From positions 28,768,001 to 28,832,000 of the forward strand of contig CM060734.1 of assembly GCA_030704615.1 (NCBI GenBank): 64,000 nt of DNA, given 5' to 3'. Every line of letters begins with the position of its first letter. The stretch's first letter is position 1. A model generated the notes under the pieces. It saw only the letters and a program-made list of their open reading frames with translations, made no database searches and had not been told where the DNA came from. Shown here piece after piece: positions 10,647 to 59,295 of the stretch. The position numbers were made by a program, and so were the translations under genes. This DNA is from Takakia lepidozioides. Lineage: Eukaryota > Plantae > Bryophyta.

Positions 10647-10649
10647 GGA

Positions 10650-12470: not shown

Positions 12471-13712
12471 TAATAGCTAGACAATATGTGTTTCAGATCT
12501 TCTATACTCACACAATCAACAATGCGTCCTAAACACAATCAGCTTTTATGGAGGGTGGAAGCAATAGAAAGTGGAAGCTGAAGAGACAAAACTGATTATT
12601 AAAAAAATTGAAAGATGCAGAGGAAGATGGAAAAACACAATAATTATGACTGAAACCAAGAAAACAACAAAAGACACAATAACCATGACCAAAATCTACA
12701 CAAACAACAAACAAGAAGATGAAAAGCCACACAACAAGCATCAGTGGGAGCTGGAAACAGAAAGGTGGAAGCTCAAAAGTCACTAAGATGTATGCAAATT
12801 ATTGACTACAAACTATTAATTTTGGCTAAAGATTAACTATTAACATACATTAATTATTGAAATTTCAATAACATGTTCAGGAAATTAGAAACTTAACTGC
12901 TGACATTCTTCAAACTCATTCATTACCTGCGCCAAAATCGAAAAAAACAGAACCACATATCATCCCCATGGCTATAAATTTGCCCCAAACTATATAGAAT
13001 CATGCAGAATGCACTTCTGTTGTATGTGTTGTAGACAACTACATACAAACCATTTCTACATACAAACCAGGAACACAGATTATCCGGGCATACCATTGGG
13101 GAGTCAGCTCTGGAAGATGAATCCTAAAATGCTGAAGTTGCAGTGGCATTGTGACTATTATTCTCCTCCTGCACCATCTGAATGCAACTACAGGCATGTT
13201 TTAGATATCTGAGACATAGCACAAAGAGAGCCTATGTGCGTCGGAGGGTGGTTCTCGGATTCGCAGAAAATATCGCTAGGTAGCGAGAGTGTTGCGTCCG
13301 GGGAAAGCCACACTATCGTTCCTATAACTCGGTTGCCCTAGAAACCGAACCCGCTTGCATTTCGCACCATTTTTGGTCGAGCAAAATTGGTGCTGATGGT
13401 GAGTGTGTGTAGACAAGCCTCGCGCGTCATCGGTCACTATTGGATATGGACAGGAGGGTGAGAGAGCTTCCATCTGCGGAACATATCCTCCTCACAAGCT
13501 GAGAGTTGGGGGGCGAAACTATGGCGGTGGAGATGCTTGACGCTGGGGAGATAGTCTTGGTAAAGATAGCCGGTCTGACAAATAAGGAGGAGAGAGAACA
13601 CATAAAGACTAAATAAATAGCGGAACCCTAGCGGATAGTTCATGCCTGCTAAATCTGGCTACGGAAATGGTAGGAGGGCGGAGCTCCACCCAGCGTCGCT
13701 CATCAACACCTA

Positions 13713-28700: not shown

Positions 28701-29956
28701 CAACATGTCACAGGGACTCTCCCGGGAAGGCACAGCCAATAAATTGTCACCACACCATTCAAAAAACTCAGCTAGACACTCTTTGGTAGGTGCCGACGTA
28801 GGAGCCTCTGAAACTGTGACACACTCCAGCCATAAACAGTCACACTGTATTGAGCTTAGTCCACCCCCCAGAACCAGGATCGATGTTTCTACATACTGAT
28901 ATAAAGGTCGTTTGTAGGCTATGTTTACAGTTAAGACTAAGGTGGTTCTGTTTTACAAAGCTGTTCAGTGGCTGAGAAACTGCACTGCTTTCTATCCCTA
29001 CGGGAACACACCTGGATTAGACCTTCGAGATGGTGCAATTTACAGAGTCTCAAAACCAACAACCCGGAAGACTCTCGGGGGGGTCACTCTTCATTAGGCT
29101 ACAACACCATGTGAGATCAATATTTTTCCGCACAGGGGGTTTTGAAAAAAAAATCTTGTACGAAATATATGTACGGGCAGGGGTATGATTGGTCAAAATG
29201 TTTAAGTATACGGAGGGGTAATGCATTTATATAAACTTTACAAAATTTTATATATACATATAAGGGTGCAAGTTTTTTTTTTGCATTTGTAGATGGGATT
29301 TGACCCTAAGACCACTTGAGTTTTGCTAAGATGTACTGTGCGGTTGAGATCTCTTCTTTGCTTTTCCCTCCTTTTTCACGCTTAGCAACCCTAGTTTCCC
29401 CGCGTCTTTCTCGTGGCGGCGCCAACAGCTCGATCTGTCTAAGTGGTTTCCAAAATCTCCAGACTCTATGTAGTGATTGCGCTCCTTCTTCGAGTCCCCG
29501 ATGGCTGTAGATTTCCTGGCTAAGATATTGTGGAAGATGATTCCCTGAATTGTCAAGTGCATCATCAATAGTAGAGTTCCAGTGCGGACTTTGTTCAACT
29601 TTCTTCATTGTGCAGGCTCTGGCATTTTTGTTCATGTGATCTGCCAACTCGTCAGCCGCAGCAGCAATGCATTAGGTATAAACGCAGGTGCCACAGTGCG
29701 GCAACTTACTTGAATCTGAATGCGGCTTGGGGAGGGATTTTTGCATTTGCGGTACTGCTTCAGATTATTCTAGGAGATCTCCACGTGAAGGATTATGACA
29801 TGAAGTGTTGTGGCCATATGTATTAAGATATTGTGGTGGCCTCTACATCTCGAACTTTTAGGTGCAAACATGATTAGCTATTTGTCAGCTTTTTTCATTA
29901 CAGCTATATGCTTGATAGGTCCACTGAGATATGGAAGTTTTGCCTCATTGTTACAG

Positions 29957-31137
29957 AACACCAGAGAAGCAGCATAGGCAATCAAGCACTTTGAGCTTGC
30001 GAAGGCCAAGCGGTACTTGGAAGATGTGCTAGCCTACAAACAAGATATTCCTTTCCGCCGTTTCTACACAGCTCAAGCGAAGTCGCGACATTCTAATGGA
30101 CAGGGACGATGGCCTGTGAAGTCTGCTACTTTCTTGCTTGGATTGTTGAAGAAAACAGAGAGCAATGTTGAAGTGTTGACTTCATCACCCTTCACTTCTC
30201 TCTCCAATTTTTGAGTGCTCTTGGAAGCAATCATGCTTCAAGTTATACCCGCTCCTTCTATCAAGTATTTGCAAAAGTTTAGCCTGCCATTAACATCTGT
30301 GGCATTTTTCTTGTGTGCTTGTCATGTGTTTTGGTGACTCGGTCTTGCTGTCGACACGCTCGTCATTTCACACATACAGGTCAACAAGGCCCAGAAGCAG
30401 CGCCACCGAACCTACTGAGCACATGATCGCAGCACTAGTCGTGCGCATCATACCTTTTCCCTTTAATCTAGCTGGTTCTCAGCCCAAGCAGAGGTTATTT
30501 TTGCCTAGGATGTGAAAATGTTAGCATATCTTGAAGTGTTTGGTAGACTCGCTATGCCGAGATATATTCCAGTGGTTCTGTTAGCTGGTTAATCTCGCTT
30601 GCAGAACATAATATCCACGTCGTACAGCAGACAGTCGTCTTAGGTCTTCAGAATAACCACTGGTGACTTCTAGTTCAACTTGCAGCCTACATGTCATCGC
30701 CTTGCCCTCTTGAGCTGACTCTCTCAAAGAAGGAGGTTGCTGTGAAGAAAGAGGTGGGTTTTATTACCATGAATCTGTTTCCGTATGCTCTTTTGTTTGT
30801 CTGGACTATAGAATAAAGCATTACTTGTGGGGAAAAGTACTCAATTTCCTTCCAGGAGTGGTAGTAAACTTAGGTGCAGAGCCGAAATCTGACAAGGAGT
30901 GTACTTGGCTGATTGTTGATCTACTCATGCAACAATTGGAAATGTTACTAGCCACCAAACGTTCAGACAGTTTAGAATCACATGGACTTCAGAGTTTAGG
31001 GTTCTTCCTCTTGTTGTGTCATCTGCTTATTCTATGGATGGCGGTGTTTGACGTGGCAGGTGGACACAGAGATTATTCCTAGGAGGTCCCGTAAACAACA
31101 AGCGCACTTGCGAAGTGGTGCCTCCTCCTCCTCATAG
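29957..31137 (+). pseudogene. RPL17: 60S ribosomal protein L17 (uL22) copy with introns, inside the transposon
   Basis: Exons 29957-30172 ([36 protein letters not shown]), ~30340-30440 (GL.VD.L.ISHIQVNKAQKQR.RTY*AH), 30686-30753 (YMSSPC.LELTLS.KE..VKKE), 31083-31137 (..LRSGASSSS*). Stops present and GVGR deleted. Confidence 0.93.
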
Positions 31138-32569
31138 ACAAGCATCGACCATAGCTCTTATGTCAGGTTTTAGCCCTGTCTTGTTTCCTGTGTAGTGTAC
31201 TCTAGCTGAAGATCGAGTCATTGCTCTAGTAACAGCGCGTCCATTTATTTTCTCTCATTGTCCAAATCTATGTGCAATTATCAGGTGGAAAATAATCGAG
31301 GGTTGGGACGTGGTTGGATGGCATGGCAGGGACATATGATTCAAGAGGGTGAAGTGGTATGCTACTTAATGGAGCAGCTAGGAACCTAGCAACCTGTGGA
31401 GGTAGGTAGAGTCTTCCTATATGGAAAGATGATTGACTTAAGATGCCTGAAATTTTTTAGGCTAAGAATGTGTTCTTGAGATTATATGTTTCTCTCTTGA
31501 CGCAGGTCTCCAAATCGGGTGTACAGATAAAGCTATTATTTAAGAGCCCTTTCAGGTTAAGCACAGTATGTGTTTAAGATTATGTGCATTTACCAAACTT
31601 CAATGGGCTTCAAAACCCAGCCCTTTTGAAAATTCTGAGTTTCCTAGAGTGAGTGAACAAGCCTAAAAACCTTGAGCACTCCCTCATTGAAGGCAAAGGA
31701 CTAGTTATGCAAACTTGAGATGGCCAAATGATTGTCTTAGTGTGAAGACTAAGTTCTGAAACTGATCACTGCAGGCTGAAACTAAGATGAGGTTGTGAAG
31801 GTCTTGTGGAAAGATGGAGGTCAGTCTCTTTTTCATTGCACACATGTTTTTATTGCCCTTTGTATTTATGGTAGCTAAAGAGAGGTTTGCAACAGTTGAT
31901 GTTAACGTGCCTTTTGTATCTAGGAGCTGCTGAGTGACACGTATTTAATCGTCAAATTGGCAGGCATTGCTCCTTATGCTTCTTGCACCTTGTATAACTT
32001 CTTCATATGCAACATGTTGCTATGGTGGTGACATAGTAGGTCTATTTCCTAAGGCCTTTGTTTTTGACATGCAAAACCGGTAGGATATGGAGACCCACTG
32101 ATTGTCATCCGCCCACCTTTCCCTTGTATCGAGAAGCTGACTTAGGGAGTGTGGTCCCATGTGCCTTGCAGGATGTCACGACATCGGAACTGGCGGTTCT
32201 AAGCGGTATCGTCCTGGTCAGTCTAGTCGGTATGGTCTTGGTCAGTCTGGTCTATAATGTCAATCGAGTCTAATCCAGTCGAGTCAAATAGGGTAGTTAG
32301 GATACTCCCGGGGGTGGTCTTTAAGTCTAATGTCTAAGTCCTAAGAATTTTATCTAATAATCACATGTCATCTAAGAGGGTATGCAACTGAATGGAGGGC
32401 CTGCCATTCAGTTGTTTGCTTCAACACACATAATGAACACATAAATCCTTCAATCATTTATGCGGCCTCCAACATCGAGTATATCGACATGGAAGAACGT
32501 CTGGAGCTTTTGAATGAGGTATATCCATGTGGCCGTGAGTTGAGCAAGACCACTGGGATGCCGGTGGGA

Positions 32570-33055
32570 GGACTGCATGTGGTAAGTGTTCTCAATTCTT
32601 TTCAGTGATGTTGATTTTTCATTGATGTACTCTTTTGATTTAGAGGTTACCATGAGGTTTCTTCAAATGATTCAGATGTGTTAATGTGTACTTGCAAACA
32701 GACTGCACAGTGCCCATGCAATGCGGAGTTGTGGTAAGTCAAAAATACTTTGGTGCAAGATTGATAGAATATGAGGTATGTTAACTTCTAACTAATGTCT
32801 ATTTGTAGAAGAATTATAGTTAGAACTTCAGTTTTGGACTGCCTGTGGTAACTGTTCTTAGTTCTTTTCAGCAATGTTGATTTTATTGATGTACTCGTTT
32901 GACTTAGAGGTTGTCATAAGCAAATGATTCAGATGTGTTAATCTATCATTGCAAACAGATTGCACGGTGTGTCCCTGCAGCGAGTTGTGGTAAGTCAAAA
33001 ATACTTTGGTGCAAAATATGAGGTATGCTAATTTCTATCTAATGCCTATTTGTTA
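32570..33055. repeat. Tandem duplication of ~265 bp
   Basis: GGACTGC.TGTGGTAA..CAAATGATTCAGATGTGTTAAT..GTTGTGGTAAGTCAAAAATACTTTGGTGCAA repeated at ~32570 and ~32836. Confidence 0.85.
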
Positions 33056-33888
33056 CTTCAGTTTTGGTTAGTGTGGCTACAAAATAGAGAGGGGAAAAGG
33101 AAGAATAGAGGAACGGGGTCATAGAAATGGTAATCGCCATGCTAAAAAGCTCATGGAATGTTATATAGTCTACGTTAAACTGATTTTTCATATGAAGATA
33201 GGTCTAAATGCTTATAGAATGATATGTAGAATGTTTCTCATTTTAGAGAGGATATGCTTCTGGATTTGAGATTTTGTTCATGTCATATTACCTTTTGCTT
33301 GTATGTGCAGGTTAACAGTTGTGACTAGATGGATACTTCTACACTAAGTTCACTATTAAATTGGGTTTAGTGTCAAACCATAGACCATAGAACCTTTCAA
33401 TTCACAGCCTTTGTCCATAAGAGATTGAAAATTCAGATAACAAAACTTGCGCGGAAGCGCTGTCAAAATTCTAGCAAGAATGAAATAATAATGAGGGACG
33501 CGGAAGCGCTGCCCAAATTATTTCACGTTGCTCTGAATTGGGAATGAATGTATAATTGAACATATAATGAACAATATATTATATATTACATAGCAGATTT
33601 ATTGTCATAAATAACTACTATGATGATAATGGGATGCATATATTCAATGTATGCATCTCAAAACCTGAGTAGTTATCAACCTTAATGAATATGGATTATC
33701 CATTTGTTAGTTTTATGGTCTGATGGGATGATCTAGTCTTGGAGTTGGTGGTTACAATTTGCATTTTTAGTTAGAATATATATATAATTAGTATCTGATT
33801 TTCTTCTATCTGGTTAGCAATTATGATTCCATAGTATAGACATATTATGTGAATGTTGTATAAATTAGAAAGTGGAAGTTTATGAAAG

Positions 33889-33955
33889 GGGGGAGGAAGA
33901 AGAAGAAAGTCCACCGTTCAGCCTGAACGGTGGACTTTCTTCTTCTTCCTCCCCC
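33889..33955. repeat. Perfect 33-bp-arm palindrome
   Basis: GGGGGAGGAAGAAGAAGAAAGTCCACCGTTCAG-C-CTGAACGGTGGACTTTCTTCTTCTTCCTCCCCC. Confidence 0.95.
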
Positions 33956-34045
33956 TTTTTTTTTTGGTTGTATCATGGTTCAAAACCCTAATTATCTCTT
34001 AGGTATTGACTTTTTGATATTCTGTGTAGGGTAAGATCTAAGACA

Positions 34046-37000
34046 ATGGAAGAGGTGTGGGAGATAAAGGTGTATGAAGAAGGAGTGCAACAAGGAGTTG
34101 TGGATGTACCAGCAGTAGCCACTTTGGAAATCGTACGAAGAGAAATAGAATTGGATGCTCTTGTGGAATTTGAGTACAATTTCTTGACAAAGGAGGGGTC
34201 CATTTTGAAGGAGAGTCAAGAAGCAAGAAGAGCTGTTGCAATTGACAAGACTGTTAATATCAAAAGACGACAAGTGAAGCATGTCAACCAAGAAAAACAG
34301 ATTGAGGGGAGTCAATCTATCCCTTCACATTCCAGAGAGGATGCAAACATTGGTCATGAGGAATTTCCAGGGGATGTGTTATCACAGGGGGCTCTTTCTC
34401 AGGGACGTTGTTCCGATAATCGTGACTATCTCATAGCTCAACATACACAAGAGAGAGATCTCAACTCTACGCCTCCGTCGGTTTCTTGGAAGGAAAGCAT
34501 CTTAATGAGTGAAACCATGGTGGCCAAATGGGAGAGTGGTATTTTCAATACTATGAAGAAACTACGTGGTTTGGATCCACCACGAGATGATGAATTCGAG
34601 CTCGAGACATTTGATTCATTTGGCATTCCATATGCACGGTTATGGTGTCATGAATGTCAAAAAGAATATGGGTCCAGGTGCACACTTGATAAAGATCCAA
34701 ACATGGTGTTGGACAATTTTTTCAGGAAGCACGTCCGAGGTTGCACCAAACACGAAAAGAATTATGTTGCACGTCGGAAAAGAAAATTGAAAGATGGTGT
34801 CCAACTAGTCACTTCCTTGGTTGCTGAAAATGGGCATCCTCCACTTACTTTCCCTCCAATCACAAACAACTTCAAAGTTGTGATTGATGAAGCAATTTCT
34901 GAACTTGAAGCTTTCAACAATGAGAGGGCAGATGCACGTTTTTTGGTAATTGACCATACAATTGATTATAGTGACCATCGGCGTGTGAAATTCAGATGTG
35001 AGATATGTCGTGATCGTTTCTTTCAGCTTTGTCCTCAAACTGGAAATTTGAGGACAAGCATGATAGAACATCTAAAGGCCAATCGTCACATTGTGAATTA
35101 TGGTAAAGAACAGACTGGAGAGGAGGAGGGAGGTGTGGCTCGTACTGGGCTCAGAGGTCGACCCAAGAAACGAACTATTCTTCCAAATCAGACCTCATTG
35201 TCCACTTTTTTCCGACGTGTGGTTTCTAAGCCTAATGATGGGGCGATTGAGTCAAGTTCTTCAGAGGACTTGCGCCCAACTATGGAGATGAGATCAGAAA
35301 AGGTTGATGGAGGCGTTTGTGATGAAAGGACCGCGAAGGGTTTTTCACCGCTACCATCGTCTTCCGCTGGTTTTTATGTGGAGCTTCCCCTGGAAGAGAG
35401 CCGAGAACATCTTCCTAGTCATTCTCGTTCAACTACTACAACTGCCCCAAGTAAGAGCATAACAACACATCTCAATTGTTTATGTTGGGGACTATGGGAG
35501 GACACAATAAAGGTGAATGGAAAAAATCTGTTTATCAAACCATTGCTTGATGATCAAAACCGTGGGAGATGTTGGTGGGCTGAACCACATGCACAAGAGG
35601 TGCTCTTCGATGGCAATAGAGAGTGGAAGATCAATGGTTTGTTTAGGCATGAGAAATGCAAAAAGATCTCAAAAGATGATGATCCATTCGAGGGATTTAG
35701 CTGCTCATACTGCCAAAGCATTCCTCAAATTACTAATTTCCGTCATCGAGTATATAGAGAGTCAAAGGCAAAAGAGAAAAGAGGTGAAAGGAAAATAGTC
35801 CAAGGACGAAGAATTGATTATTTGACTCAAACTGAATTGAAGCAAGAAGCTGGTTTGTATGGAAGGAAAGTGAGAGATTTGAAGCGGTCATTGTTTTGGG
35901 AGAAACAAAAGACTGTGATGTTGTCAGTGCGGATCCGAACCATGAAGGAGGCAAATAAAGAGGCTTGGAAGAGAAAATATATCAGGAAATTTTGCAACAA
36001 TATTGTGGATGCTCATAGATCTGGGAAGTTTGGGGGAAAGAAAGCTTTGTGGAGTTGGTTACAGGATATTGGAACAAATCTGATGAGGAAGAAACAGGGC
36101 CACAGATACTGTAAGACATCCACCGCTATAGCTGAAACAGTTAAATTGTGGGGTGGCCCACGATTGCACAATTTTTTGTGCGATAATTTGATGGGACCAT
36201 CCATCTCTTCTACAAAACGTGTGGCTCACAAAGCTATAGATTTTGTGCCAGGACAGCACGAGTTTATATTCAAAGCTATCGGTCAAATATATAGTGATGC
36301 GATGAAAAAGCATGCGATTACTTCACGAGTCCCAGTGATGTTGGTGGAAGATGAAACATCAATCAAAAGATATATTAGGTAAACTAAATTTCAGAGACCT
36401 GATATTATGTTTAGATGTCATTTCCATTGGTGCTATACTATTCTGATCAATTATCGTGATATGCATAGCATGCCTAACCATCTTCATTTGATTGTGGCAA
36501 TGTAGATGAAATGCAAAGTCGGATGTGCTAGTGGGCTTCTGTGGGACAAAATGAGATGAGCATGAGTGTGTATCAGATTTCATGGTTCAGGTTGGTGCTG
36601 GAAAAGAGGGCTATGAAAACATCGTTGGAGCTTTTACAAATGGGGTTAGATGTAATTATGCCACTGCATGCTCTTCTTCCACGCATTGTACTAGTGGTTC
36701 AAGGGACTTGCAATAAGTTTACTTCAGATTTTGTTCGTGATCAATGGCAGAAAATTGAACACATGTGGAGGACAAGTGTTGAAAGATTCATAGGGCCTAT
36801 TGTGGGTCATGCGTCTGATGGTGATGCTCGAAGGAGAAGCCTTATGTTGAGTGATTACTTGAGCATGGATGGGGTACGGTTTGACATAGATTGGTGTGGC
36901 TGGAAAATGTCTGGAAAAATGGTAGAAGGGCAGGTGGGTGGCCTACATGATCAAGACTTTATACATAATGGGAAAAAGCTTATTAATCCATTGGATAGCC

Positions 37001-37708
37001 CAGTTAGGGTTCTGGAGTTGGGAGGCCATATTGTTGGTTTGGGGCATGTTGCTATGGTGTACTTCAATTTTGCAGTTGATGAGCATGGATTGAAAGAGGG
37101 AGACTATTTGAGAGAAGATAGACAAAATTGGGCAGCAACACAACGGATTGCAAGCAGACATGTGCAAATATGTCTTCAAGCTCTACATGATGGGAATTAC
37201 AAAGGCGATCAAACAAGAAGATACAATTGGTACCAAAGCATATTTGGAGGTGGTGGGAGACTACATTGATATTTTTCTATCTACCACTTTGGGTCTTCAC
37301 GAGAAGGTTCGATTGGCATCCAAAGTTTCATATTTTTTCAGGTTGTGGCGTCTTTGGCTTCATCATAGCGATGCCCATGAGGTGAAGAAGAATTTCATAA
37401 GCATGCAGGCATTTCTTGACATTCAGATGTCATGTCACTTTGTTGTGCTCTTGATTAAGTTGTTTCGAGACTACTATCCAACCTTGGAGTGTCCGTTACA
37501 TCTCACTGGATCTGATGCAGCAGAAATTTTCTTTAGCAAGGTGGGAGGGATGATTAGTCAAGAATGAGTTTTTGACTTGGGTGATTTACTTCATAGCTCT
37601 GGAGCTTTGAATAGGATTGCAGAGCATGAGTATAGTTCAGATGGGCCAGAATACAAACGTGCACACTCCAAACAAGAGCATGTGTGGACATCATTGCACA
37701 AAAAACAT
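34046..37708 (+). pseudogene. P-element/THAP9-like DDE transposase, N-terminal and catalytic part
   Basis: Exon 34046-36378, intron 36379-36505 (GT..AG), exon 36506-~37708. Motifs VEDET, GHASDGD, QDFIHNGKKLINPL, DRQN, GSDAAEIFFS occur in P-transposase order. Two C2H2-like fingers N-terminally. Stops and frameshifts in exon 2. Confidence 0.8.
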
Positions 37709-38581
37709 GCTGAGGTGACCACTTGGCTATCTGATGGGCGTTCACTATTGTGTATACTCAAAATGAGGTAAGAATCAATCTCATGTGCTTAATGTGCATG
37801 ATTGCAGGAGTCTTCCCTGGGGGGTTCACTCTTGGTATAAACATCATAACATGTGCGATCAAGACATGTTTTTTAATACCTCTGTACTTAGCATTGGACA
37901 GTGATTATGACCCCCTTTATGTATTTTAATTATCAATTTATCCATCCCTTGTGTATAAAATCTTGTACAAATTTTTCTTTTTAAAAAAACCCCTCCTCGG
38001 CATTTTGTATATATTTTAAAGCATTTAAAAAAATCCTTTGTTCATACATTTACATACTTTGTATTTGGGCTCAAATTGAAAATCTTGTTTTCATCTTTCT
38101 CGTAAGCATATAGTTCTACGTACCAAACCTTGATCATAAGCATTATACATTATTCTTTGAGTCTTGAGGCGTGTGATTAAGAGCAATATACAAGGCTGGC
38201 TATAAACTTCAGTAAAATTGCCCAATCGAATTGATTCCTCAAGCAACGTATGAATTCATCTAAGTGATAATTATATATACAAAAAGACTATTGTAAAAAT
38301 AATGGTCATACATTTTCAGTGTGAATGAGAGAGTAGTGGTCATAGCATTTCAATGTGTAAGAGAGAAGAGAAAATTCACATTGTCTATAATACATTGATG
38401 ACCATCCAAATTATCAACCAATGTCTTGGAAGTTGTTCTATGTGTATATTGTAGTTTGATAGCATATCAGTGTCTGTCACTTTGTACCTAACATTTTAGA
38501 ACTCAAGGTTGTTTCTTCTTTTGTAATGACTAAGATAGCCTAGTGTTTAACGTAAACATTATCAAGGCACCTTAGGTGGTA

Positions 38582-40540
38582 AGATGGTATTTTGTAAGGT
38601 CACCCGCGTAATGACTTTTGTTGTTCATGACATTTTTGCAGGACATACGAATATAGGTGTTAGTTGCTCATGTAAAGTTTCACATCGAATTGAAATCACA
38701 CGGATGGTATTTTGTAAGTTCACCCCGTGATGACTTTTGTTGTTTATGACATTTTTGCAGGACATACGGATGTAGGTGTTAGTTACTCATGTAAAGTTTC
38801 ACATCGAATTGAAATCACACGGATGGTATTTTGTAAGTTCACCCGCGTAATGACTTTTGTTGTTCATGAAGTTTTTACAAAACATATGAATGTAAGTGTT
38901 AGTTGTTCATGTAAAGTTTCAAATCCAACTAAAATCATACGGATGTTGTTTTGTAAGTTCAGAGGTGTGACGATTTTTGTTGTTCATGAAATTTTGGGAG
39001 GATCTATGAAGTTTTGTAAGTTCACTGGTGTAATGATTTTCATTGTTCATAAAAGTTTTGTAGGACCTATGAATGTAGGTGTTAGTTGCTCATGTAAAGT
39101 TTCAAATTCAACTAAAATCATACAGATGGTGTTTTATAAGTTCACTGGTGTAATGATTTTTGTTGTTCATGAAATCTTTGCATGACCTATGAATATAGGT
39201 GTTAGTTGCTCATGTAAAGTTTCAAATCCAACTAAAATCATACATATGGTGTTTTATAAGTTCACTGGTGTAATGATTTTTGTTGTTCATGAAATCTTTG
39301 CATGACCTATGAATGTAGGTGTTAGTTGCTCAGGTAAAGTTTCAAAACCACCTAAAATCATACGGATGTTGTTTTATAAGTTCACTGGTGTAATGATTTT
39401 TATTGTTCATGAAAGTTTTGTAGGACCTATGAATGTAGATGTTAGTTGTTCATGTAAAGTTTTAAATCCAACTAAAATCATACAGATGATGTTTTATAAG
39501 TTCACTGGTGTAATGATTTTTATTGTTCATGAAAGTTTTGTAGGACCTATGAATGTAGATGTTAGTTGTTCATGTAAAGTTTTAAATCCAACTAAAATCA
39601 TACAGATGATGTTTTATAAGTTCACTGGTGTAATGATTTTTTTTGTTCATGAAATATTTGCATGACCTATGAATGTATGTGTTATTTGCTCATGTAAAGT
39701 TTCAAAACCACCTAAAAGCATACGGATGTTGTTTTGTAAGTTCACTAGTGTGATGATTTTTATTGTTCATGAAAGTTTTGTAGGACCTATGAATATAGGT
39801 GTTAGTTGCTCATGTAAAGTCTTAAATCCAACTAAAATCATACAGATGATGTTTTATAAGTTCACTGGTGTAATGATTTTTTTTGTTCATGAAATATTTG
39901 TATGACCTATGAATGTAGGTGTTAGTTGCTCATGTAAAGTTTCAAAACCACCTAAAATCATACGGATGTTGTTTTGTAAGTTCACTGGTGTGATGATTTT
40001 TATTGTTCATGAAAGTTTTGTAGGACCTATGAATATAGGTGTTAGTTGCTCATGTAAAGTTTCAAATCCAACTAAAATCATACAAATGGTGTTTTATAAG
40101 TTCACTGGTATAATGATTTTTGTTGTTCATGAAATCTTTGCATGATCTATGAATGTACGTGTTAGTTGCTCATGTAAAGTTTTAAATCCACCTAAAATCA
40201 TACGGATGTTGTTTTGTAAGTTCACTGGTGTGACGATTTTTGTTGTCATGAAATTTTGGGAGGATCTATGAATGTAGGTGTTAGTTGCTCATATAAAGTT
40301 TCAAATCCAACTAAAATAATACGGATGGTGTTTTATAAGTTCACTAGTGTAATGATTTTTGTTGTTCATGGTATTTTTGTAGGACCTATGACTGTAGGTG
40401 TTAATTGCTGATGTAAAGTTTCAACTCCAACCAAAATCATACGAATGGTGTTTTGTAAGTTTAGGAGTACAATGACTCTTGACGCTTATGATATTTTTGT
40501 AGGACGTATATATGTAGGGGTGTTAGTTGCTCGTGCAAAG
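38582..40540. repeat. Satellite array, ~16 copies of a 120-bp unit
   Basis: Unit ~GATGGTGTTTTATAAGTTCACTGGTGTAATGATTTTTGTTGTTCATGAAA..GACCTATGAATGTAGGTGTTAGTTGCTCATGTAAAGTTTCAAATCCAACTAAAATCATAC with 120-bp spacing. Confidence 0.97.
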
Positions 40541-40629
40541 TGCAAAATGTATGTTGTATCTGTAAGAGATCTGTAAGGGTGTGCTCTTATTCTTACCAAG
40601 TCAATGCAAGGGATTATCATATTATCATA

Positions 40630-41400
40630 CCAAGTCAATATACATGTTGGGTTTAAACTTAGAACTATATGACATCCATTTTGTAATATATACATGAAAA
40701 TGGAAAACAAAATTTGTACCGTTTTGGACAATCATTAAGTTTAGTTTCATTTGTTGACAATGTGATAGATTTGAAATGACACTATTAACAATGTGATAGA
40801 TTTGATTTGACATTATTAACAATGTGAGATATGAAAGGTTACAAAGAAACATCATATTTCAAAGATATTCATACATTTGTTGCTCAATAGCATTTTAGGG
40901 AAGTCATATTGGGTCATACATGTTGGGTTTGAACTCAAAACAATGCACGACATTTGGTTTATCAAATGTGACCGTAATTGGTAGCGTGGATAGATAACCA
41001 ATTTTTGCAGCCCATGTCTTCATGCACATACACTACAATGAAAAAAGATGTTTCTTTCATTTTTGATCTTAAGTTTAGTCTAATATGTTGGCAATGATAT
41101 ATTCAAAATGATACTTATATTAACAATGGGAGATATGAAAGGTTACAAAGAAATACAATAGTTTTAAGATCTTCGTACATTTGTTGTTCAATAGCATTTC
41201 AATATGAGTGCGAGAGGAGAGGAAATTGACATGGTATATAATGATATCTTTGATTACCATCCAATAATGTCTTGAAATGTGTATATTAGTGTGTGTGAAA
41301 GAGTAAGATATTATAATGACAAGGGAACTCATACAAATCATGCATGTTGGATTTGAACTTGGAACTTTGTAACAATCAATTTTGTGTTCTAACCACAAAG
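40630..41400. repeat. Degenerate longer-period repeats
   Basis: CATGTTGG.TTT.AACT at ~40643, ~40919, ~41343; TTAACAATG.GAGATATGAAAGGTTACAAAGAAA at ~40816 and ~41120. Confidence 0.75.
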
Positions 41401-41595
41401 ACACTCATCATATGTTTGAAACATTTTCAGTTTGAAATATATAATTGAGTTCATGTACATCAATGTTGCATGATCAATTTATGAAATTCAATCAAATCAT
41501 TATGCACACGGAAGACAAAAATAAAGATTATACAAGTAAAACCTGATAGCGAAAAAATTATCGAAGAAACTAGTCATGAGTTTCTATATCATGAT

Positions 41596-42553
41596 CTACA
41601 TATTTTTATTTACAAAGTCATTGAATATTTTGTCATCCCCTTCATCTAATATATAGAAACCGTTTTTGGGCTTATAACTCAAGTGTGCTAATGAAATGAC
41701 ACTTTCAATATCTACTCGGTTGGAATCATTCAAGTCATATCTATATGTACGCACCTTAGTCTCAAGAGGTTTGTACCACCTCAACACTAAGTGTAAACCA
41801 CTAGGTCTTTTCGTCAAATCAAAACCTAATTTGTATTCCACCCATTTGGGCTTCTCTTTGGATGGATTGACATTTCTTGTCATCTTCTGAACTCGACCCA
41901 ACCAAAATTTTCCACCATCTTCACCATACTATACTGCACAATCAGATCTAATGCCAAAAAGTTCACCATTATTTTGTGGAATAATCTTTTTGCTAAAGTA
42001 CACTCCTTGTTTGACTCGAGTGAGCCTATCCTTTGATAACGTCGGATTGCCATTCAATTGACTCACCAATGTCGATTTGAAAATAAATCGATCATCAAAT
42101 TCAACGATAGGTGAAATACCCACAACTCGGCTTCCACCCTGTTGCTCATCAACCACAACATCTAGCTCATGCCGAATTTCACTCTCAGCAACTCGAATAT
42201 CAACTTCTGCGCCATCCACTATAGTCTCATCCATGGAACCTTCCCCACAAATCTCCAAATTAGTATCATCATCTGAAATCTCCAAATCAGCATCATCACA
42301 TACTTCCAAATCAGTTTCAGATCTGTCCAAGTCGGTCCTTTTGACATTTTGGCTTGCTCTCTTCAATTTTTGTGTATCATGCAACCAAGGTTTTGACCAC
42401 CACCCTCTCAACTCCTTTTCTTTTTTCGGTTGCATTCCCAAATGCTTACACAGATTTTGGGCGTCTTCTAGTCCTTGTTGCAAAAAACCAATGAGTGCTG
42501 CATCAGTAGAGATGGCTCCATAATCTCGAAAATCTACAGCCTTCTCCAATGTT
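41596..42553 (-). pseudogene. C-terminal part of the P-like transposase (inverted)
   Basis: LEKAVDFRDYG..GLEDAQNLC..LGM..P, KSTLVSQLNGNPTLSKDRLTRV, WLGRVQKM. Begins where the + strand frame breaks after EHVWTSLH; one in-frame stop at 41929. Confidence 0.7.
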
Positions 42554-42566
42554 ACTCTAGACCCAC

Positions 42567-45500
42567 TTAAGCTGCAGTCTGGGATTCAAATCTTAGTACT
42601 ATGTAGGAGGTCACCCTGATATTGAGGGAATGGGAACGGGATTACATCCAAGTTGAAGCTCTTCACAAGGATGTGCCCTAGGCTAGGGCCAAGTTATACA
42701 GGGTAGTGCAAAAAACAAAACTGTTGGAGTTCACTTTCTTGAAAATACTGTCATACCATGTGAGCATGCACTAAATTTTTGTCAAGCCTTCAGCGGACAA
42801 ATCTGCAAAATAAAGCAAAGGGGGAGAGAGCTGGTCACACACCTTCATCAGCTTGGTACTTATTTTTATCATCAGCTGCAAATGCCAGTAAGTTATACTT
42901 AGGATTCCATTCCACACTGTTCATGGCTGCATGGCATGGTATTTGGTGAACTGAATGGCCGCTTTCCACCTCCGACTGCATGGAGTAAACAATCAGTTCA
43001 AATTCAGTAGAAGACAAGAATTGTGTATCATAGCTAACCACCAACAACGTAAAAACAAATAGAAAATTTTGATTATTTGAGGCCCTTAGCCAGAACATGG
43101 CAGTTGCTTCCAGGAGGACCTTACAGAAATCATGGGCACATCCGGGGCGAACCTTATGGATTCATAAGGTTCCTCTTAACAAAACTTTAATCTAACTGTT
43201 CTTCATGCAGTGAAAGGCTTTGACCGACAGTCCTGTCTTGAGACACCTGAGCCCTTGCACTACTGGTCCAGTGAAGGACCTTGGGTTGAAGGTTAGCTAA
43301 CCACATATTCAGATGGAAAGTGTCAAGTTTGTCTATACACCACCGAGTAAATGGTTACAATCTGAGTGAGGAGCCGTTCAATACAGTTACATGTTGGATG
43401 ACATCCAACACCCAACTGTGATCAGGTGTCACGAATTGCAAAGAATATGTAACTTCATGAAAATTGGCTTCCAGCAACAATTCATGACAAAGATAGACCT
43501 CATAACAGGCCCTGGAGTATAGTGGGACTACTACAGGTTCCCAGAATCATGAGCTTCACAATAACACCAAGCAAGCAAACTGACAGTGAATTCACATGAC
43601 TCGCATTGATTTCAGGTGTCATAAGACTGCCTGACAAGAACAGGCTCCCAATATTTCTTGATCCCTTGCAAGATTCAATATGACATAGGTTTGCAGACTG
43701 CTACCTCTATGTATCAAGCACACCTACCTACATCTGATTGACTTTAAGGTTCAGACATATCACTCACAATATCAATAAACAAATCTTCACTGGCAGAAGC
43801 AATATACCCGCCATCGTGGTTGAAGCTGACAGTTCGAACACGCCATCTACAATAACCCCAATCCCCAATGAGGTCACTTTAGACCAAGGTTACCACGTAC
43901 ACTGTCAATGGAAGGCTATCATACGCATCAGATAAACCCCCCGTTCTCAATTCATCATGTACAATAGAAGATGGTTGACCTAACCTTTCGATCAATTTTC
44001 CAAGCTGGCAGGTCTTGAGATAAGACCAAGTGATGACATTATGGTTTTTCAATTTTCATTTGGCTAACACTGAGAACATTATACCAAGCTGCCTTTTTCT
44101 TCTTTTGGTCTGAGCTTCGAAGATGTATGATAGTTTGCATTCATGAGAGTCTTCAATGGATGAGACTGACATTCACCACCTGAGCTCACAGAGATCAACG
44201 AAAAAGTACAACTGAGCCATGAGAGCACATGGTAAAGCCATACTCAAGCTTGGTGAACGTGCGTACACACAGCATCTCTGAAACATCCCACAAACTCACT
44301 AGTATTGATCTTCTAGAATTACTCACCACACAGGTTCCGTTCACCTCCATTAAACTGGGTTAAATACATTCTAAGTCCCGTTGCAGGGACAAGCGTTAGG
44401 CTACTACTAGTAATCATATTACGTTAAGCTCTGTACATTCTAACAAGACTAACTGGCTAAGTGTAACTGCCTTGACTCCTACGAACCTACTCAGGAGTGA
44501 TACGTAGATTACACCATATCTGGTGTCAACACCCCCCTTGCACTCCTGAAGTGGGTTCCAAAAACTTTGTCTCCCTGAGGGAGACATACGCTGCAGAGAT
44601 ATCTCACCTCAACTTAGTTCTTAATGAGCCGCTTAGTCCAATCTTCAACCTAATCTGGTGTGTGGGGAATTCTAATCACCGCAAGTGCAGAGTGTGAGGA
44701 ACTATAGATCCTAGCCTGGAATATTATGCTACTATAGCTCTAGAATTCTGGGACCGCTAATCTACTTGTATTTGTCTCATTTATAAACGTGTTTTTTCTA
44801 TTGCATCAAACCTACTCCTTTGTGATCATCCCAATCATCTTTCGCAATTCCTCAAACAAGTGGCTTTGTAAGTATGTCGGCTTGCTGCATCTGTGTAGGT
44901 AGAGAGAGAGAGAGAGAGAGAGAGAAAAGACTCCGGCCAAAGCCGGCGTAACTAAGAGCCACTTCGCCACTAGTGGGGATCAGTGGTAATCCCGTGGCCA
45001 GTTTGTTAACAGCTAGGAACCGGAGAGTGTGATTATTCAGATGCCCAAGGCGTCTATGCCACAAGATTGTGGTGGCCGGTGACTCGATCGTGTACAGTGG
45101 AAATGTGCATTTATCCATAATGAAACGGTATAGCCCACTAGCATCTAAGACTCCTCTTCCTACAATCTTGTTCTGATCCTTGACAATCAGACATTGTTTG
45201 TCATCAAAGACTAAAATATAACCCTGCTTGGTGAAGGAGCGGACAGACACAGGATTTCGAGTGACTCCAGGTACGTAGAGAACTTCGTGAATCTTTATTT
45301 CTCCATTGTTAGAAAGATCCACAATGCCTGTTTAATGACAGGGAGACTTTCTCCACTAGCGGTAGAAACTTGACCTTGAGCATGGCCTATGTTATCAAAC
45401 ATCCTAGCATCTCTAGTTCATCTTTCTCCATCTCCATCAAGTTCAGCTGCACGTCAAAGAGGTCGACTGCTGCATCCACGTTGCCCAGGTAAGAGTTCTC

Positions 45501-46241
45501 CCCCTTCTACTTCAAGCAGGTTTGCCTGAAACGCGGGCTGGCGATTTCCTCCATTTGCCCGGTTGCGACGTTCCCGCGCACGTTTCACCAATTCTTGTGC
45601 GAGGTCGTAGCAGTTCCGCATCAAGTGACCATTCTTGCCGCACCAGTTGCACGGTCCCACGGTTCTCCCTCCTTGTCCTCCAGATGTGCACCATGTGTCA
45701 TAGCTATTGTTGAACTGTGGAGTGCGATTGCTCAGTGATGCATTACTGAACGACAAAGCTAACGCCTTTTCCTTGACTACAGAGCTCTGACCCTGTCGAA
45801 ACTTCATGCGAGCCTCAGCCTGGTCTTTACTTCACGAAATTAACAACAGTGATGGAACAAAGCTCACATCCTCTCACATCAATACTCTCAACTACTCTCG
45901 GAGCAAGGCTCACGGAGTGATCTTAACTACGACGTACTCTCACATAACTCCAAGAGCAAAGCTCACTGTGAACAACCTCGCTACTCTGATACCATACTGA
46001 TCTTCTACAATTACTCACCACACAGGTTCCGTTCACCTCCATTAAACTGGGTTAAATACATTCCAAGTCCCGTTGCAGGGACAAGCGTTAGGCTACTACT
46101 AGTAATCATATTATGTTAAGCTCTGTACATTCTAACAAGACTAACTGGCTAAGTGTAACTGCCTTGACTCCTTCGAACCTGCTCAGGAGTGATACGTAGA
46201 TTACACCATATCTGGTGTCAACAACTAGCGTATCCGCCCCT
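42567..46241 (-). pseudogene. THO3: THO complex subunit 3 (TEX1/THOC3, WD40) 3' exons, disrupted by a copia insertion
   Basis: Exon pieces 46229-46241 + 44244-44302 (GADTLVSLWDVSEMLCVRTFTKLE), 43768-43846 (WRVRTVSFNHDGGYIASASEDLFIDI), 42843-42975 (SEVESGHSVHQIPCHAAMNSVEWNPKYNLLAFAADDKNKYQADE), and a tentative last exon ..FESQTAA* (stop 42567-42569). 5' exons not seen. Confidence 0.9.
44303..46223 (-). mobile_element. Internally deleted Ty1/copia LTR retrotransposon
   Basis: 229-bp LTRs 44303-44531 and 45995-46223 (6 mismatches by eye); TSD ACTAG (44298-44302, 46224-46228); tRNA-Met PBS TGGTATCAGAG; PPT; gag knuckle CNWCGKNGHLMRNC; VLYVPG; WHRRLGH; QQADILTKPL. Confidence 0.96.
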
Positions 46242-49290: not shown

Positions 49291-52200
49291 CTACTGAGGC
49301 TTCGGGACAGATTGTGGGATCCAAACACGAGGATCAAGATATCTTCCATACCAAGCCCAATAGGCGTGGTCGCGACCAATAGGCTTATGAGAACACTTGG
49401 CAGGGTTCTCGCTGATGTAATCTACGACTGTTGAAGCTGCAGTCATCTTCAATATATATGGCCACACTATTTTTGTCATATCATCCTGGTCAACCAAGCC
49501 CTTTGGTGATGGCTTGAATGAAATAGAGAAGAATCCAGTATTTGGTGGGTTTCGGAGGCCCTTTGAGGGCTCATCATCGACAATGAGTATTTGTCCTTGC
49601 GTTGCAAAGGGTGTACCAGGGTACTTCAAGGCAAGAACAGTGTAAATATCCTTCACAAGATATTTCATCCCAGGCATGATGTAACCGGTAGTGTCTTTGC
49701 AATCCTCAGCTGACCAGATGAAGCAAAACTTCTTTGCAATTTTCATGGGAACTAAGCACTCCAGCATCCTACAAAGAACAGCTCTTTCAGCACATGACCA
49801 AATTGCCACGTGAAAATGCGTCAACGCAAGGTTGAGAAACTCCAAGACTCTGGGCCGGGGAACCACAAAAGGTCTGTCGGGAACATGAACTATAACTTTC
49901 CTGAAACGAAATCTCTCCTTAAACAATTCACCGCCGGTTGGAGGTGGCTGGTAGCAGAGGAGTCCGTTGAAACTCAATATTAACAACATCCGTTTCCTCT
50001 TCCCCGGTGTGGCAGATGAAGGTTGATGGACGAAGCCATCGTGCGCAATTTAAGGAAATTCATTTCAGTGTTTACGCCGTCAGAAACAACACGATGTAGT
50101 CTTTATTAGTTTCACAGTGACATCTACGTTTGCCGAGACATAAATGTCCCGGGAACGGACTATTTTAAAGGATCTAGAGTAGACAATATATCGAAGAGGA
50201 GAAATCATGAAAAGAGGAACGTCGGCTATCAAGTAGAGGTCGGGAGGCGTATTCAAGAAGTTATGCGGCTCCATCCCCGCCTGTGTAAAAATGACGGAGT
50301 TAGTTTGGGACCGCAAAACAAACTGCAACCGAAAGTGGAGAAATGGTTTTGAAATTTACCATTGAATGTCTCGCAGAAGAACAGTGGATTCCTGCGGGCT
50401 TGGATTGACGAGGCGCCACAACATCTGAGGAAGTCCTCATGTGTTTGGAGTCCGTTTTTTTTTTCTTGTCAACTTTTTGTCCGTTGGAAAGATTTCCTGC
50501 AGAGGAAGGAAATGGCTCGGGGGTTCTTTTTCGCCTCTTTGGTGCAAAACATTGTGCCACCAGTTCAGGGTCAGGCTGTGTCGATGTAGGAGATGTTTTG
50601 CCATTGAACGACATGGGGAGTAGAGGGGCAACAACAGGCAGGCACAGGAAATTGTTGCTTGAGCACTCGACATCCTGGATGGAATGAAAATGCAACGAAG
50701 GAATAATTTACCTCGGAACTGCATTCCAATGCAGACGTCGTTTGACAGGAAGGTCATAATCTGCAGATTTTCTGACCTGGAGTGACAGATGAACATCAGA
50801 CCCCAAACTAAGTAAAACTAGGAGAATGAGCAAGGAGCGAGAAATGAGTTTAAGTCACCTGACTCCTGCAGATTTGGGCTGTCCAACCCTCGTGCTGGGA
50901 AGATATGCGAGGAAGAGACGGAACAAGGTGCAGCGGAGCCGTAGCCAAGTCGTCGATGGTTTCCCTTCGGATTGGAGAGACCAGACCTTGCGTATTGAAC
51001 GGAGAGGGTGAGGAATGTTGGGTAAGGTCGATTAAGTTTCCGGCATATTTTTGTTCTTCAACTGCACCTTGGGCTTTAGACCCAGGAGGACCCAAGTGGA
51101 GAAGAGTGTCGGCCGCTTCTTGAGAGGCAAATAGTATGACCAAGGATCCACCCTCAATTTGAGAACCATCCTGAACCATCGGAAATCCTTCAATACTCCG
51201 ACGCACTGCTGATCCGGAGGTTTCCCTTAGGGGACCTGAGGAATGGTTGACATCGTCAACATCTCCTTGAACCTGCTAAAGAGACATAATCATCAATCCG
51301 GGAGTGCAGGAATGTGAACCTCCACTGAACAGTGGAGGTTACTAGATATAGTCATGTCCCCATATAAAGTCATGTATGCTCTGGGATTGGGATGGCCCCG
51401 AATGTGCGTCGAAAAATTCAACATCAAATGAGTGAAAATGAGAGTACCATATCTAATCCGTGTGTGATTACAAGGCAATGAAAATCAGACACCATGAAGA
51501 TATTCAATAGCTCGAGAGAGAGGGGATTGCTCAATAATATCTTTATTTTGAAGCATCATATCTGAGACTCTTAAAACCGTTGTCAACTTGTCCTCAATAT
51601 AATCCAAGAGTGGCCTAAACTTGGGATCACTTAAAACATTTGAAAAAAGACTCAACCCTATCCATCAGTCTCTACGGTCTGGAACGGTTTGAGAACAAGA
51701 CATGAATCGGGCGGGTTCAATACACACTTCATGGCGGTGTCGTCAATGAGCAGAATGTTACTCTTGGTGTACTGTCCACCAAATCTCTGCCAGACCTTCA
51801 TCAGTGGCTTCAAAAACAAATGAGGAGGGTCCAATCTGGATTTAACTTGAGGGTGAACCGAAGTAGGACAGAAAATACAATCCTCTTGAGACATAACGAA
51901 GGCCAGTTGAGGGAGACCACGAAGTAAAAAATCCAGGATGGGCTGCAAGTTCTTATACATCATAGAGCTCCAAATCCCTAACCGGAAGTGTTTCTGCACC
52001 TCTGTCCACACTTCGCGATATTTCTCCCGTCTAAAGACAAGTCGGAATCTGACAAGAGCTGGTATTCTGTAGTCTGTTTCTGAAAACCGGGGGACATTGT
52101 AGCTCTTTTGGTGCTTCAAGATTTTGCACAAGACTCCATTCATGTCAAAAATTATCAAACGCAACCCTTGCGCAGGTGGAGAAACAGGTGCTCCAATTTG

Positions 52201-53560
52201 CCAGAGAGTCATTCATACTTAAGATGATAAAAAGGGAACAATACAATGCATTGGAAAAACCGACCCAAGGCAAGTGAACAAGAACGTTCACTGGACAGCC
52301 GAGGTTCACCAAACTCTATTAAAATATCTTATGTCCCACTGCAGCGGCACGCAACTCATGATTGCTAAGGAACTTCTGATTTGTAAGCTGTCGGGTCTTC
52401 CTCAGCGAAAATGTCGTAAAGCCGTTTAAGTAGATGAGATTTTTGGGAGCTTTAGGCTATTTTGAGTTGAATGTCGATCTATGCATGACGGAATTGTCAC
52501 TGTTGTAAGTTCTGGCCTTGTAATAGTACTTCCCGAACATGGCTTTGGCAATAGTCTCGACATTCATTTCAGGTCCCATGTTCCAAAAACAAACGGCAAA
52601 CTTTTTGACGGCCCATTTAATGAATTTGTGAAGACCGTTTCACGTAGCTAACTTGAATTTCCCTGCGGAGATACAAGGCTGGGTGGTAGGAGGGGCTTTC
52701 TTTCCATCCTTTAGGTAAACCTCACGAAGGTAACCGATGTCCAGAACCAGGACGTAATATCCTGACCGACATCCATTCGGTCCCCAAGGAAGGTCATGTA
52801 GATCGTTTGGATTGATAGAAATGGAATAGTCGACTGGAGGGTAATGCATGTTGTCCTGTGGAATAACAAAAGAATTCATTATGAATTTCAACTTCAGTAA
52901 GCCCAATGTAGAGAAACGGGAAAAAGGAGTTGAAAGGATTACCGTTTTCGGGGGAGGCTGCTGGGTTCTGCTCCTCCTCTTTCCCCTCTCTCCAAGAAAT
53001 GCTATCCTCCGATTCTATGGCTCCAGATGGCAACGTCGACTGTCCAGTGGAGGTTACTTGTAGGACCGGCTCAGGTGGGCGACACTGATTGTCCGATCCA
53101 CCTGTCTCTTCACCGTCTCAGTCTCGATGGAGTCGGTTCGTGTGTGTGTGATCTCCTCAGATGTCGTCTCACGAATCTACAGGAAATTAGGAATCCGATG
53201 GATGAGAAGTATGGTGGGCATAGTGATCCGACAAAATTATCGAATTGAACAATACCGAAGATGAGACTAAAAGACTAAAAGACCAAAAGACTAATAAGAA
53301 TAAAGCCAATGGAGTACCCGCTTCGGGGTCTGTTGTTGGATTCCGTGCTTGTGCTGCTCAATATCTTCTCCTTCCCCTCGAGTATGAGGGTTCTCTAACT
53401 CATTCCCTGCAGATGGCAACGTCGACTGGACAGTGGAGGTTAGTTCCAAAACTGGCTCAGGTGACCTGACCCTCATTGTAAGATCCACCTGTCTCTTCAC
53501 TGTTTGAGTCTCGATCGAGTCAGTTCGTGTGTGTGTGATTTCCTCCGATTGGGATTCTTG
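49291..53560 (-). pseudogene. Multi-exon gene with three FCP1/NIF-like HAD domains (cassette copy 2)
   Basis: Same order as copy 1: domain 1 ~52860-52330 (YYVLVLDIGYL), domain 2 ~52203-51560 (RLIIFDMNGVL..ILLIDD..KCVLNP), domain 3 49989-49291 as an open 232-aa ORF (MLLILSFNGLL..ILIVDDEPSKGLRNP). First exon duplicated (53020-53160, 53410-53550). Confidence 0.82.
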
Positions 53561-58311: not shown

Positions 58312-58797
58312 TCACTCGAATGCCCACTGGTTTTCTTTGCGGACCGCGTCCTCTTCCTCGGGTGTGAAATCGTTCTCAATCTTAAAGGTCTTGCGAATCT
58401 CGTCTGGCGTCTTGTCTTTGATCATGTCAGCTACAGTCTGACATGTCAAGTCCAGCAAACCCTTGATGTTAAGGTAGTTCGCAGCCAAAATCAGGTCGAA
58501 GAGAATGGCTTGGTCCACCTTGATGTACTCAACGTCCCAGTTCTTCATCTCATCGTCAGGTTTTGCCTTCTTCTCCTCCTGCTCGTTACCAGATGGCTTG
58601 CGCGCATCAACATGCGCCCGGCAGTACTCAATAACTTTGGCGAGGACTGAACCTTTCACATTCGGTACGGGGATTAAGTGTTCCATCCCTGTTTCTTCTA
58701 TCAAATTCTTGATGGTCTCCGACTCAAACGCAACCTCGGGATCGACCTCGAACATCTGTTCGTCAGAGCTTCGCAGCTTCACCGTATCACCAGACAT
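58312..58797 (-). CDS. SKP1: SKP1-like SCF E3 ligase subunit, intronless, 161 aa
   Basis: [96 protein letters not shown]; open frame. Confidence 0.97.
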
Positions 58798-59295
58798 GGT
58801 GGCAGTTATTCTCACTCCCGCAATCCTCCTGCAATCCTCACTCTACACAGACACAGCAAACAGCCCAAAAGCCTGATCTCTCCTCCAAATCTCTTGATCC
58901 TTGAGATTGCACAAGGGTAGATGGACGGACAGCCTACACTTATATGCCCACCCTCTGATTGTTTAATCATCTAAGTTATACCCGCTGAAAACAACTTTTC
59001 CGCATTTAGTGAAAGCCTTTTTAGGCCCTCAAAATCTTTAAAAGAGGCATTTTGATATTCTTTTCGTTTTAGGGCACCTGGGCTAGGTTACTTTTTCCTT
59101 ACTCTCTCAATGCGGGAGTTTTGCTGGCGATCTGTCGGAGAGGAGCTCTTCGTGGATCGAGAGAGTGCACACAGCAAACGCTGGCCTTATAGCCCTCATT
59201 AATATGATCTTTGCTGTGAACTGCGAAATCCGGTTGAGTGTCCAGTCTTTCCAGGTAACACTCATGAGCTCCTTTCCTTTGCTGTCTCATTTGAA

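Follow-up and report, generated by a model that had tools for sequence, protein, structure and literature searches.

A dead and rearranged P-superfamily transposon without a THAP domain in the land plant Takakia lepidozioides

Introduction

The closest described systems to the transposon reported here are the Drosophila P element and THAP9, a domesticated transposase-derived host gene of vertebrates. A GTP requirement of the P transposase has been described, and the THAP domain has been reported as restricted to animals (PMC7776569). Here we analyse a stretch of 64,000 nucleotides from the bryophyte Takakia lepidozioides (assembly GCA_030704615.1, contig CM060734.1, positions 28,768,001 to 28,832,000 of the forward strand), called the window below and numbered from its first letter, which contains a ~13.4-kb element of this superfamily. 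A preliminary description made from the sequence had placed a P-element-like transposon in this stretch, with a large transposase gene, terminal inverted repeats (TIRs) and a target-site duplication.

In the superfamily table of Wicker et al. 2007, P is reportedly marked as present in 'plants'. Neither of two recent reviews of plant transposons includes P (PMC10741241, PMC9033089): both name hAT, Mutator, CACTA, PIF/Harbinger, Tc1/Mariner, Sola and Ginger, and one of them also Helitron and Replitron. A Pfam-based survey of 1,007 plant genomes that screened for P reported seven other superfamilies only (PMC12973397). Since the family described here has the P fold and an 8-bp duplication and no Pfam match, its members would go unseen in a Pfam-based screen. 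Repeat libraries might already hold similar consensus sequences, and we make no claim to a first sighting.

Results

Termini and target-site duplication

The element spans ~29,066 to 42,615 of the window. It is very probably an autonomous cut-and-paste transposon of P architecture that inserted with an 8-bp target duplication and was later turned into an immobile copy by inversion of ~4.8-4.9 kb, its 3' third, and by further lesions. A simple unit running from TIR to TIR over ~13.5 kb (29,067-42,553) had been proposed for this locus: the element itself is real, and its layout proved to be more complex. Its left boundary lies at 29,074/5, where a run of seven G followed by TCACTCTT starts at 29,075, directly after GAAGACTC at 29,067-29,074, which bears out the left end of the preliminary description. 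The terminus recurs only once, at 37,816/7, with one mismatch and on the same strand as the left one. The two ends read TCGGGGGGGTCACTCT and CCTGGGGGGTTCACTCT, the terminus string quoted earlier having been inexact. They are identical at 16 of 18 terminal positions and carry, at equal offset, a 14-nt subterminal motif (consensus ACATGTG-M-GATCAA) that occurs nowhere else in the element; past ~47 nt they part, as is usual for the 5' and the 3' end of a single element.

The sequences abutting the two termini also match. Ahead of the second terminus, the 8-mer GAGTCTTC at 37,808-37,815 reverse-complements the left duplication exactly, and one further nucleotide matches, so that GGAAGACTC at 29,066-29,074 pairs over 9 nt with its exact reverse complement at 37,808-37,816. 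An exact 8-nt reverse-complement match beside both termini has a chance probability of ~1.5e-5 at fixed positions. Because both ends start with a G-run (left CTCGGGGGG, as in the relative L002; right CTGGGGGG) and the shared string is 9 nt long, an 8-bp duplication is possible in either register, in keeping with the 8-bp, possibly 9-bp, duplication first suggested.

L002, an uninverted relative on an ENA contig, provides independent support for the termini and the 8-bp duplication of the family. There the element occupies 7,176-15,351 (8,176 bp; 7,168-15,359 with the duplications) and is bounded by a perfect 11-nt TIR, CTCGGGGGGTG, and a perfect 8-bp duplication, GAATAGTC. It adjoins HEAT, DUF525 and FKBP genes. 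Two other G-run sites in the Takakia window, at 5,276 and 55,083, were checked as termini and both were rejected.

Transposase gene and its lesions

Transposase coding sequence occupies the middle of the element. An ATG-initiated open reading frame (ORF) of 778 aa at 34,046-36,382 lies upstream of a putative intron, and the coding sequence past this intron runs through three reading frames to ~37,732. An exhaustive search recovered 386 relatives at E <= 1e-3, among them named sequences from the fern Adiantum nelumboides, the lycophyte Diphasiastrum complanatum, the brittle star Amphiura filiformis and the anemone Actinostola, the fern and the lycophyte being the closest. The closest long relative, P0202, is a 1,016-aa intronless ORF on a metagenome contig. 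With the core piece of the window, P0202 shares 57% identity, the Adiantum protein 52% and the animal group 36-44%. In brittle star and sea anemone, P0155 and P0203 belong to the same Pfam-invisible transposase family.

The + strand of the window carries EDET, SDGD..RR, DQD..H..KK..N and GSD..E.FFS; in 58 relatives EDET, SDGD..RR, DQD..H..KK..N and G.D..E..S are almost invariant, and all of them are found in the window, where the candidate D/D/E motifs are intact. The motif order given in the preliminary description (DE, SDG, DxxH..KK..N, DxxExFFS) was thus recovered, on the + strand from 36.3 to 37.6 kb. Its estimate of ~1,500 aa for the restored protein agrees with the sum of the coding pieces, which were searched individually. 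The intact element would have held a single large gene with one intron and a product of about this length.

Comparison with the relatives shows extensive damage. A TGA at 36,507-9 replaces a conserved W, and the + strand carries further TGA codons at 36,549-51 and 37,565-7 and frameshifts near 36,650-62 and 37,186-37,200. With the TAG in the C-terminal part, the reading frame is broken by four in-frame stops and two frameshifts, and the copy is therefore dead. Since it can encode no transposase and its ends are directly oriented, it is also immobile as an autonomous unit.

Probable inversion of the 3' third

The orientation of the second terminus and the strand of the coding sequence change together. 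Residues 1-690 of P0202 map to the + strand at 35,546-37,732 with 43-58% identity, and residues 682-992 map to the minus strand at 42,552-41,599 (E 1e-45, 35% identity), in collinear order; fifteen further relatives match the minus-strand coding part. A right terminus had been placed at 42,553. No inverted copy of the terminus is present at that point or nearby, and a search of the window for an inverted repeat pairing 29.07 kb with 42.55 kb found none. The minus-strand transposase homology stops at 42,553, which makes this position an inversion junction and not a terminus. A single inversion of ~4.8-4.9 kb accounts for ends that face the same way, for the flipped duplication and for coding sequence on the minus strand. 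Before it, the element ran from the left TIR through a 5-kb 5' region, the transposase gene and a 3.8-kb 3' region, which includes a 2-kb array of 120-bp repeats, to the right TIR.

The inversion would have followed insertion, with one breakpoint within the transposase gene near codon 1,230 (37,714-37,807) and the other 0-90 bp beyond the right duplication. A 7-nt inverted pair, GGTGACC (37,714-20) and GGTCACC (42,609-15), lies at the junctions; ~0.3 such pairs are expected by chance, so that this microhomology is a candidate breakpoint feature and not a significant one. The TIR 6-mer GGTCAC recurs at both candidate breakpoints.

The inversion is read from the assembled sequence, and it could in principle be an assembly error, the true element being uninverted. 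We regard this as unlikely, since the two junctions hold no long inverted repeats that might mislead an assembler and since the stops and frameshifts mark the copy as old enough for a rearrangement. Termini in direct orientation and the position of the coding parts on opposite strands would also be seen if two unrelated partial elements lay side by side in opposite orientation. That arrangement is very improbable: the 8/9 nt beside one terminus are the exact reverse complement of those beside the other, which assigns both termini to one insertion event, the ends differ past ~47 nt in the manner of a 5' and a 3' end, and the coding parts abut at the same P0202 residue (690 vs 682) with nothing missing or duplicated.

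Placement in the P superfamily

Sequence searches gave no link to a described superfamily. Pfam searches with eight ORFs, and then with six frame-corrected window pieces at E up to 10, returned nothing relevant, and ten long relatives together with P0202 (11 in all, E 0.01-1) showed no Pfam domain; the TNP-like/THAP9 families PF21787, PF21788, PF21789, PF12017 and PF12596 were matched neither by the window pieces nor by the 11 relatives at these thresholds. PDB sequence searches with the window pieces found nothing, as did a word-based protein search with the first ORF, used whole and as residues 540-778. A profile of 58 relatives run against PDB sequences did not find the P transposase and returned coiled-coil noise only.

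Structure comparison gave a different result. The AlphaFold2 model of P0202 has a predicted local distance difference test (pLDDT) value of 79.5, with the core above 90. In a Foldseek search this model had Drosophila P transposase as its top match (6pe2/6p5a, E 8e-10), followed by RAG1 at 1e-3. VIA-align placed it on 6p5a_A with Z 26.1 and a root-mean-square deviation (rmsd) of 4.3 Å over 407/442 aligned residues, and the runners-up were Transib (Z 11.3), RAG1 (~10) and Hermes (8.5). The aligned spans, 166-656 of the model on 135-566 of the P transposase, cover the helix-turn-helix (HTH), the split RNase H domain and the insertion domain, and the offset at the alignment end sets the conserved E621 of P0202 on the catalytic E531 of P (catalytic residues from PMC7776569). 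Residues 400-610 of the model are helical and lie inside the aligned span, and by fold they correspond to a P-like insertion domain between the second D and the E, which in P itself is the domain that binds GTP.

The model therefore supports an HTH, RNase H core and insertion domain that share the architecture of the P element and THAP9, and the features of the DNA are those of the superfamily: an 8-bp duplication in the window and in L002, and TIRs with a subterminal motif at both ends. The assignment to the P superfamily made in the preliminary description is thus upheld by the fold of a relative and finds no counterpart among sequence profiles. Neighbours in the ESM Atlas by language-model features and shape include the PF21787, PF21788, PF21789 and PF12017 clusters, vertebrate THAP9 among them. 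Unnamed fungal clusters are also among the closest Atlas neighbours, the closest unnamed ones coming from Basidiomycota; together with the brittle star and anemone relatives, these neighbours indicate that the branch is not plant-specific.

Some of these features would suit a hAT element as well, since hAT also makes 8-bp duplications and has an insertion domain in its RNase H fold, and since the N-terminal finger is BED/C2H2-like, its nearest Atlas clusters being zf-BED with a score of only 0.80-0.81. Membership in hAT is nevertheless hardly tenable, because Hermes reaches only Z 8.5 (285 residues, rmsd 7.4) against 26.1 for the P transposase, no piece or tested relative has a C-terminal hAT dimerisation domain or matches a hAT Pfam family, and the termini are unlike the usual hAT ends. 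Least probable of all is a domesticated host gene comparable to vertebrate THAP9, which might be suggested by a long, conserved ORF to which a domain like a chromatin reader has been added, given that termini and a target duplication are present, that the ORF is broken by four stops, two frameshifts and the inversion, and that the relative L002 has a perfect TIR and duplication.

N- and C-terminal domains

The first reading of the locus had noted C2H2-like fingers in the place of a THAP domain, and this holds: Pfam searches with the window pieces at E up to 10 gave no THAP match, and a finger of the C-x2-C...H...H type with an AT-hook is conserved in the family. The plant relatives share the N-terminal pattern C-x2-C-x22-25-H-x5-6-H, with a GRPKK AT-hook after it. 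The Atlas lead for this finger, zf-BED, scores only ~0.8.

At the other end of the protein, the last ~110 aa (41,599-41,928, minus strand) correspond to a domain of ~120 aa that was modelled as a beta-barrel with a pLDDT of 74.7. Among its top 24 chains, 15 are BAH domains (DNMT1, DIM2, EBS, ORC1b, ZMET2, AIPP3 and others) at Z 5-6.7, none reaching 8; the chromo-barrel of MRG15 ties with the best BAH matches at Z 6.7, and Pfam gave no BAH match. These comparisons give moderate to weak grounds for calling the modelled domain BAH-like. From N to C terminus, the intact protein would have comprised a C2H2/BED-like zinc finger with the AT-hook, a conserved CxxC region and a coiled coil, the HTH, an RNase H-like DDE core split by a large helical insertion domain, and the putative BAH-like beta-barrel.

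Other features of the element and its flanks

The coordinates of all features of the element are collected in Table 1. Its 5' region contains a fragment of a ribosomal protein gene, RPL17, of the cytosolic type, without a few conserved residues; the top seven matches include wheat, other plant ribosomes and one yeast chain. The fragment looks like the capture of a host gene by the transposon. Capture of ribosomal protein genes as a family trait was considered and rejected, since the uL22 gene beside a relative at the locus L003 is of the organellar L22 type and shows no similarity to the RPL17 fragment of the window. In the 3' non-coding region, the units of the 120-bp array are 82-93% alike and fill half of that region; the subterminal end motif does not occur in the array.

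Table 1. Features of the transposon in the Takakia lepidozioides window
Feature	Position in window	Strand	Remarks
Left target-site duplication	29066..29074		9-nt GGAAGACTC shared, so that an 8-bp duplication fits either register
Left (5') terminus	29074..29120	+	~18-nt TIR CTCGGGGGGGTCACTCTT and subterminal motif at 29,107-29,120; CTCGGGGGG start as in L002
RPL17 (uL22)-derived fragment	29300..31200	+	matched part 29,978-30,211 only; E 6.5e-24 to wheat uL22, residues 35-106
Tandem duplication, ~260 bp	32570..33053		5' region of the element; repeat families D10, D11, D16, D17, D19
Near-perfect palindrome, 37-nt arms	33885..33959		97% complementary, 1-nt spacer, purine-rich arm; 87 nt upstream of the transposase ATG
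Exon 1	34046..36378	+	N-terminal finger(s), AT-hook, conserved CxxC region, coiled coil, HTH, first catalytic D (EDET)
Putative intron, GT..AG, 127 nt	36379..36505	+	missing from the intronless relative P0202
Catalytic region	36506..37732	+	SDG, DQDxxHxxKKxxN, GSDxxExFFS; several lesions
Junction zone 1	37714..37807		transposase homology ends; remainder presumably the reverse complement of the original right flank
Right target-site duplication, reverse-complemented	37808..37816		GAGTCTTCC; reverse complement of the left copy
Right (3') terminus, now inward on the + strand	37816..37862	-	TIR CTGGGGGGTTCACTCTT and subterminal motif at 37,849-37,862
120-bp tandem array, ~17 units	38583..40624		3' non-coding region
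C-terminal ~320 aa	41599..42552	-	in-frame TAG at 41,929-31; P0202 aa 682-992, E 1e-45
Junction zone 2	42553..42615		inverted interior meets the rest of the right flank

The right flank holds, on the minus strand, the last exons (42,838-43,900) of a homologue of THOC3 (THO complex subunit 3, WD40), which shows that the element landed just downstream of that gene, ~200-300 bp past its stop codon. Several other genes and repeats were seen in the window. First, a Copia-type gag/pre-integrase fragment on the minus strand (44,852-45,322) is flanked by a 229-nt direct repeat (44,303-44,531 and 45,995-46,223; 97% identical, 1,692 nt apart). Second, an NLI-interacting-factor-like phosphatase domain occurs in two minus-strand ORFs (49,291-49,989 and 51,658-52,212, E ~1e-7 each), which suggests a local duplication. 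Lastly, an intronless Skp1 gene with both Skp1 domains (E 6e-30 and 1e-21) lies on the minus strand at 58,312-58,815; neither its protein nor the first transposase ORF had an identical entry in the public collection.

Discussion

The element belongs to a branch of the P superfamily that lacks THAP and is invisible to Pfam, and it occurs in a land plant as a well-bounded, dead and rearranged copy. Its dead state and its inverted 3' third go beyond what the preliminary description had claimed. Besides the possibility of a misassembly, several points weigh against the reading as a whole. First, the fold comparison was made with the relative P0202, 35-58% identical, in place of the broken protein of the window. 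Second, the sequence-profile link to P is missing, both in Pfam at E up to 10 and in the family profile run against the PDB. Third, the breakpoints of the inversion are placed only within ~60-90 nt, and we infer the join of the flanks from this one copy. Lastly, the BAH assignment is weak, as Z values of 6-7 lie below the level that excludes chance.

How the copy arrived and how its active relatives move may be pictured by analogy with P. Insertion would have taken place ~200-300 bp downstream of the THOC3-like host gene, with an 8-bp target duplication being made. In active relatives the N-terminal finger or fingers and the HTH would bind the subterminal site, after which the transposase would pair the ends, release the element by cutting the donor and insert it with an 8-bp stagger. 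The C-terminal domain might direct the transposase to chromatin, and GTP might be used as it is by P.

A wider reading, which we offer tentatively and hold to be rather doubtful, is that the element represents a branch of the P superfamily that is old, widespread and as yet without a name, and that would have a BED-like finger and AT-hook in place of THAP and its own BAH-type reader steering integration to a particular chromatin state. Such a branch would persist in non-seed land plants (lycophytes, ferns and liverworts), in animals and perhaps in fungi, unseen by Pfam-based surveys, and internal inversions could have been left by a transposase acting aberrantly at pseudo-ends.

The main value of the dead copy is as a well-bounded example. 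With the family annotated, repeats listed as 'unknown' and hypothetical proteins in the genomes of lycophytes and ferns would be reclassified, and the P superfamily would gain hosts and domains beyond those now known. A cut-and-paste transposase that carries a possible histone reader would also be a natural case bearing on the choice of targets by mobile elements.

Comparison with known systems

The combination of a mobile-element recombinase with a C-terminal beta-barrel of the chromatin-reader type recalls the chromodomain integrases of chromoviruses. This is an analogy only, since the enzyme class of those proteins (retroviral-type integrase) and their reader fold differ, and a targeting role in the present family is conjectural. 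Transib and RAG1, the second-best structural matches (Z 10-11), share the RNase H core with an insertion domain, but the duplication of Transib is 5 bp, the match is far below that of P and no RAG-like zinc-binding modules were seen in the element. With hAT elements such as Hermes the family has in common 8-bp duplications, BED-type N-terminal fingers and an insertion domain in the RNase H fold, while the fold match is far weaker (Z 8.5) and the family has no hAT dimerisation domain.

Closer parallels are found within the P superfamily. Zebrafish Pdre2 and other P-like elements outside Drosophila share short TIRs (13 bp), subterminal repeats and 8-bp duplications with the element (PMC7776569); elements of the Pdre2 type keep THAP and match Pfam families, whereas the family described here does neither. 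Compared with Drosophila P and THAP9 (6p5a, 6pe2), the element has a C2H2/BED-like finger and AT-hook in place of THAP, an extra C-terminal domain that may be BAH-like, a protein about twice as long (~1,500 aa), a land plant as host and no Pfam P match, and its G-run TIR, CTCGGGGGG, is unrelated in sequence to the 31-bp TIR of P. In common with them it has the HTH, an RNase H DDE core split by a large helical insertion domain, the 8-bp duplication, the motif order D..D(2)H..E and short TIRs, with a separate motif lying subterminally at each end.

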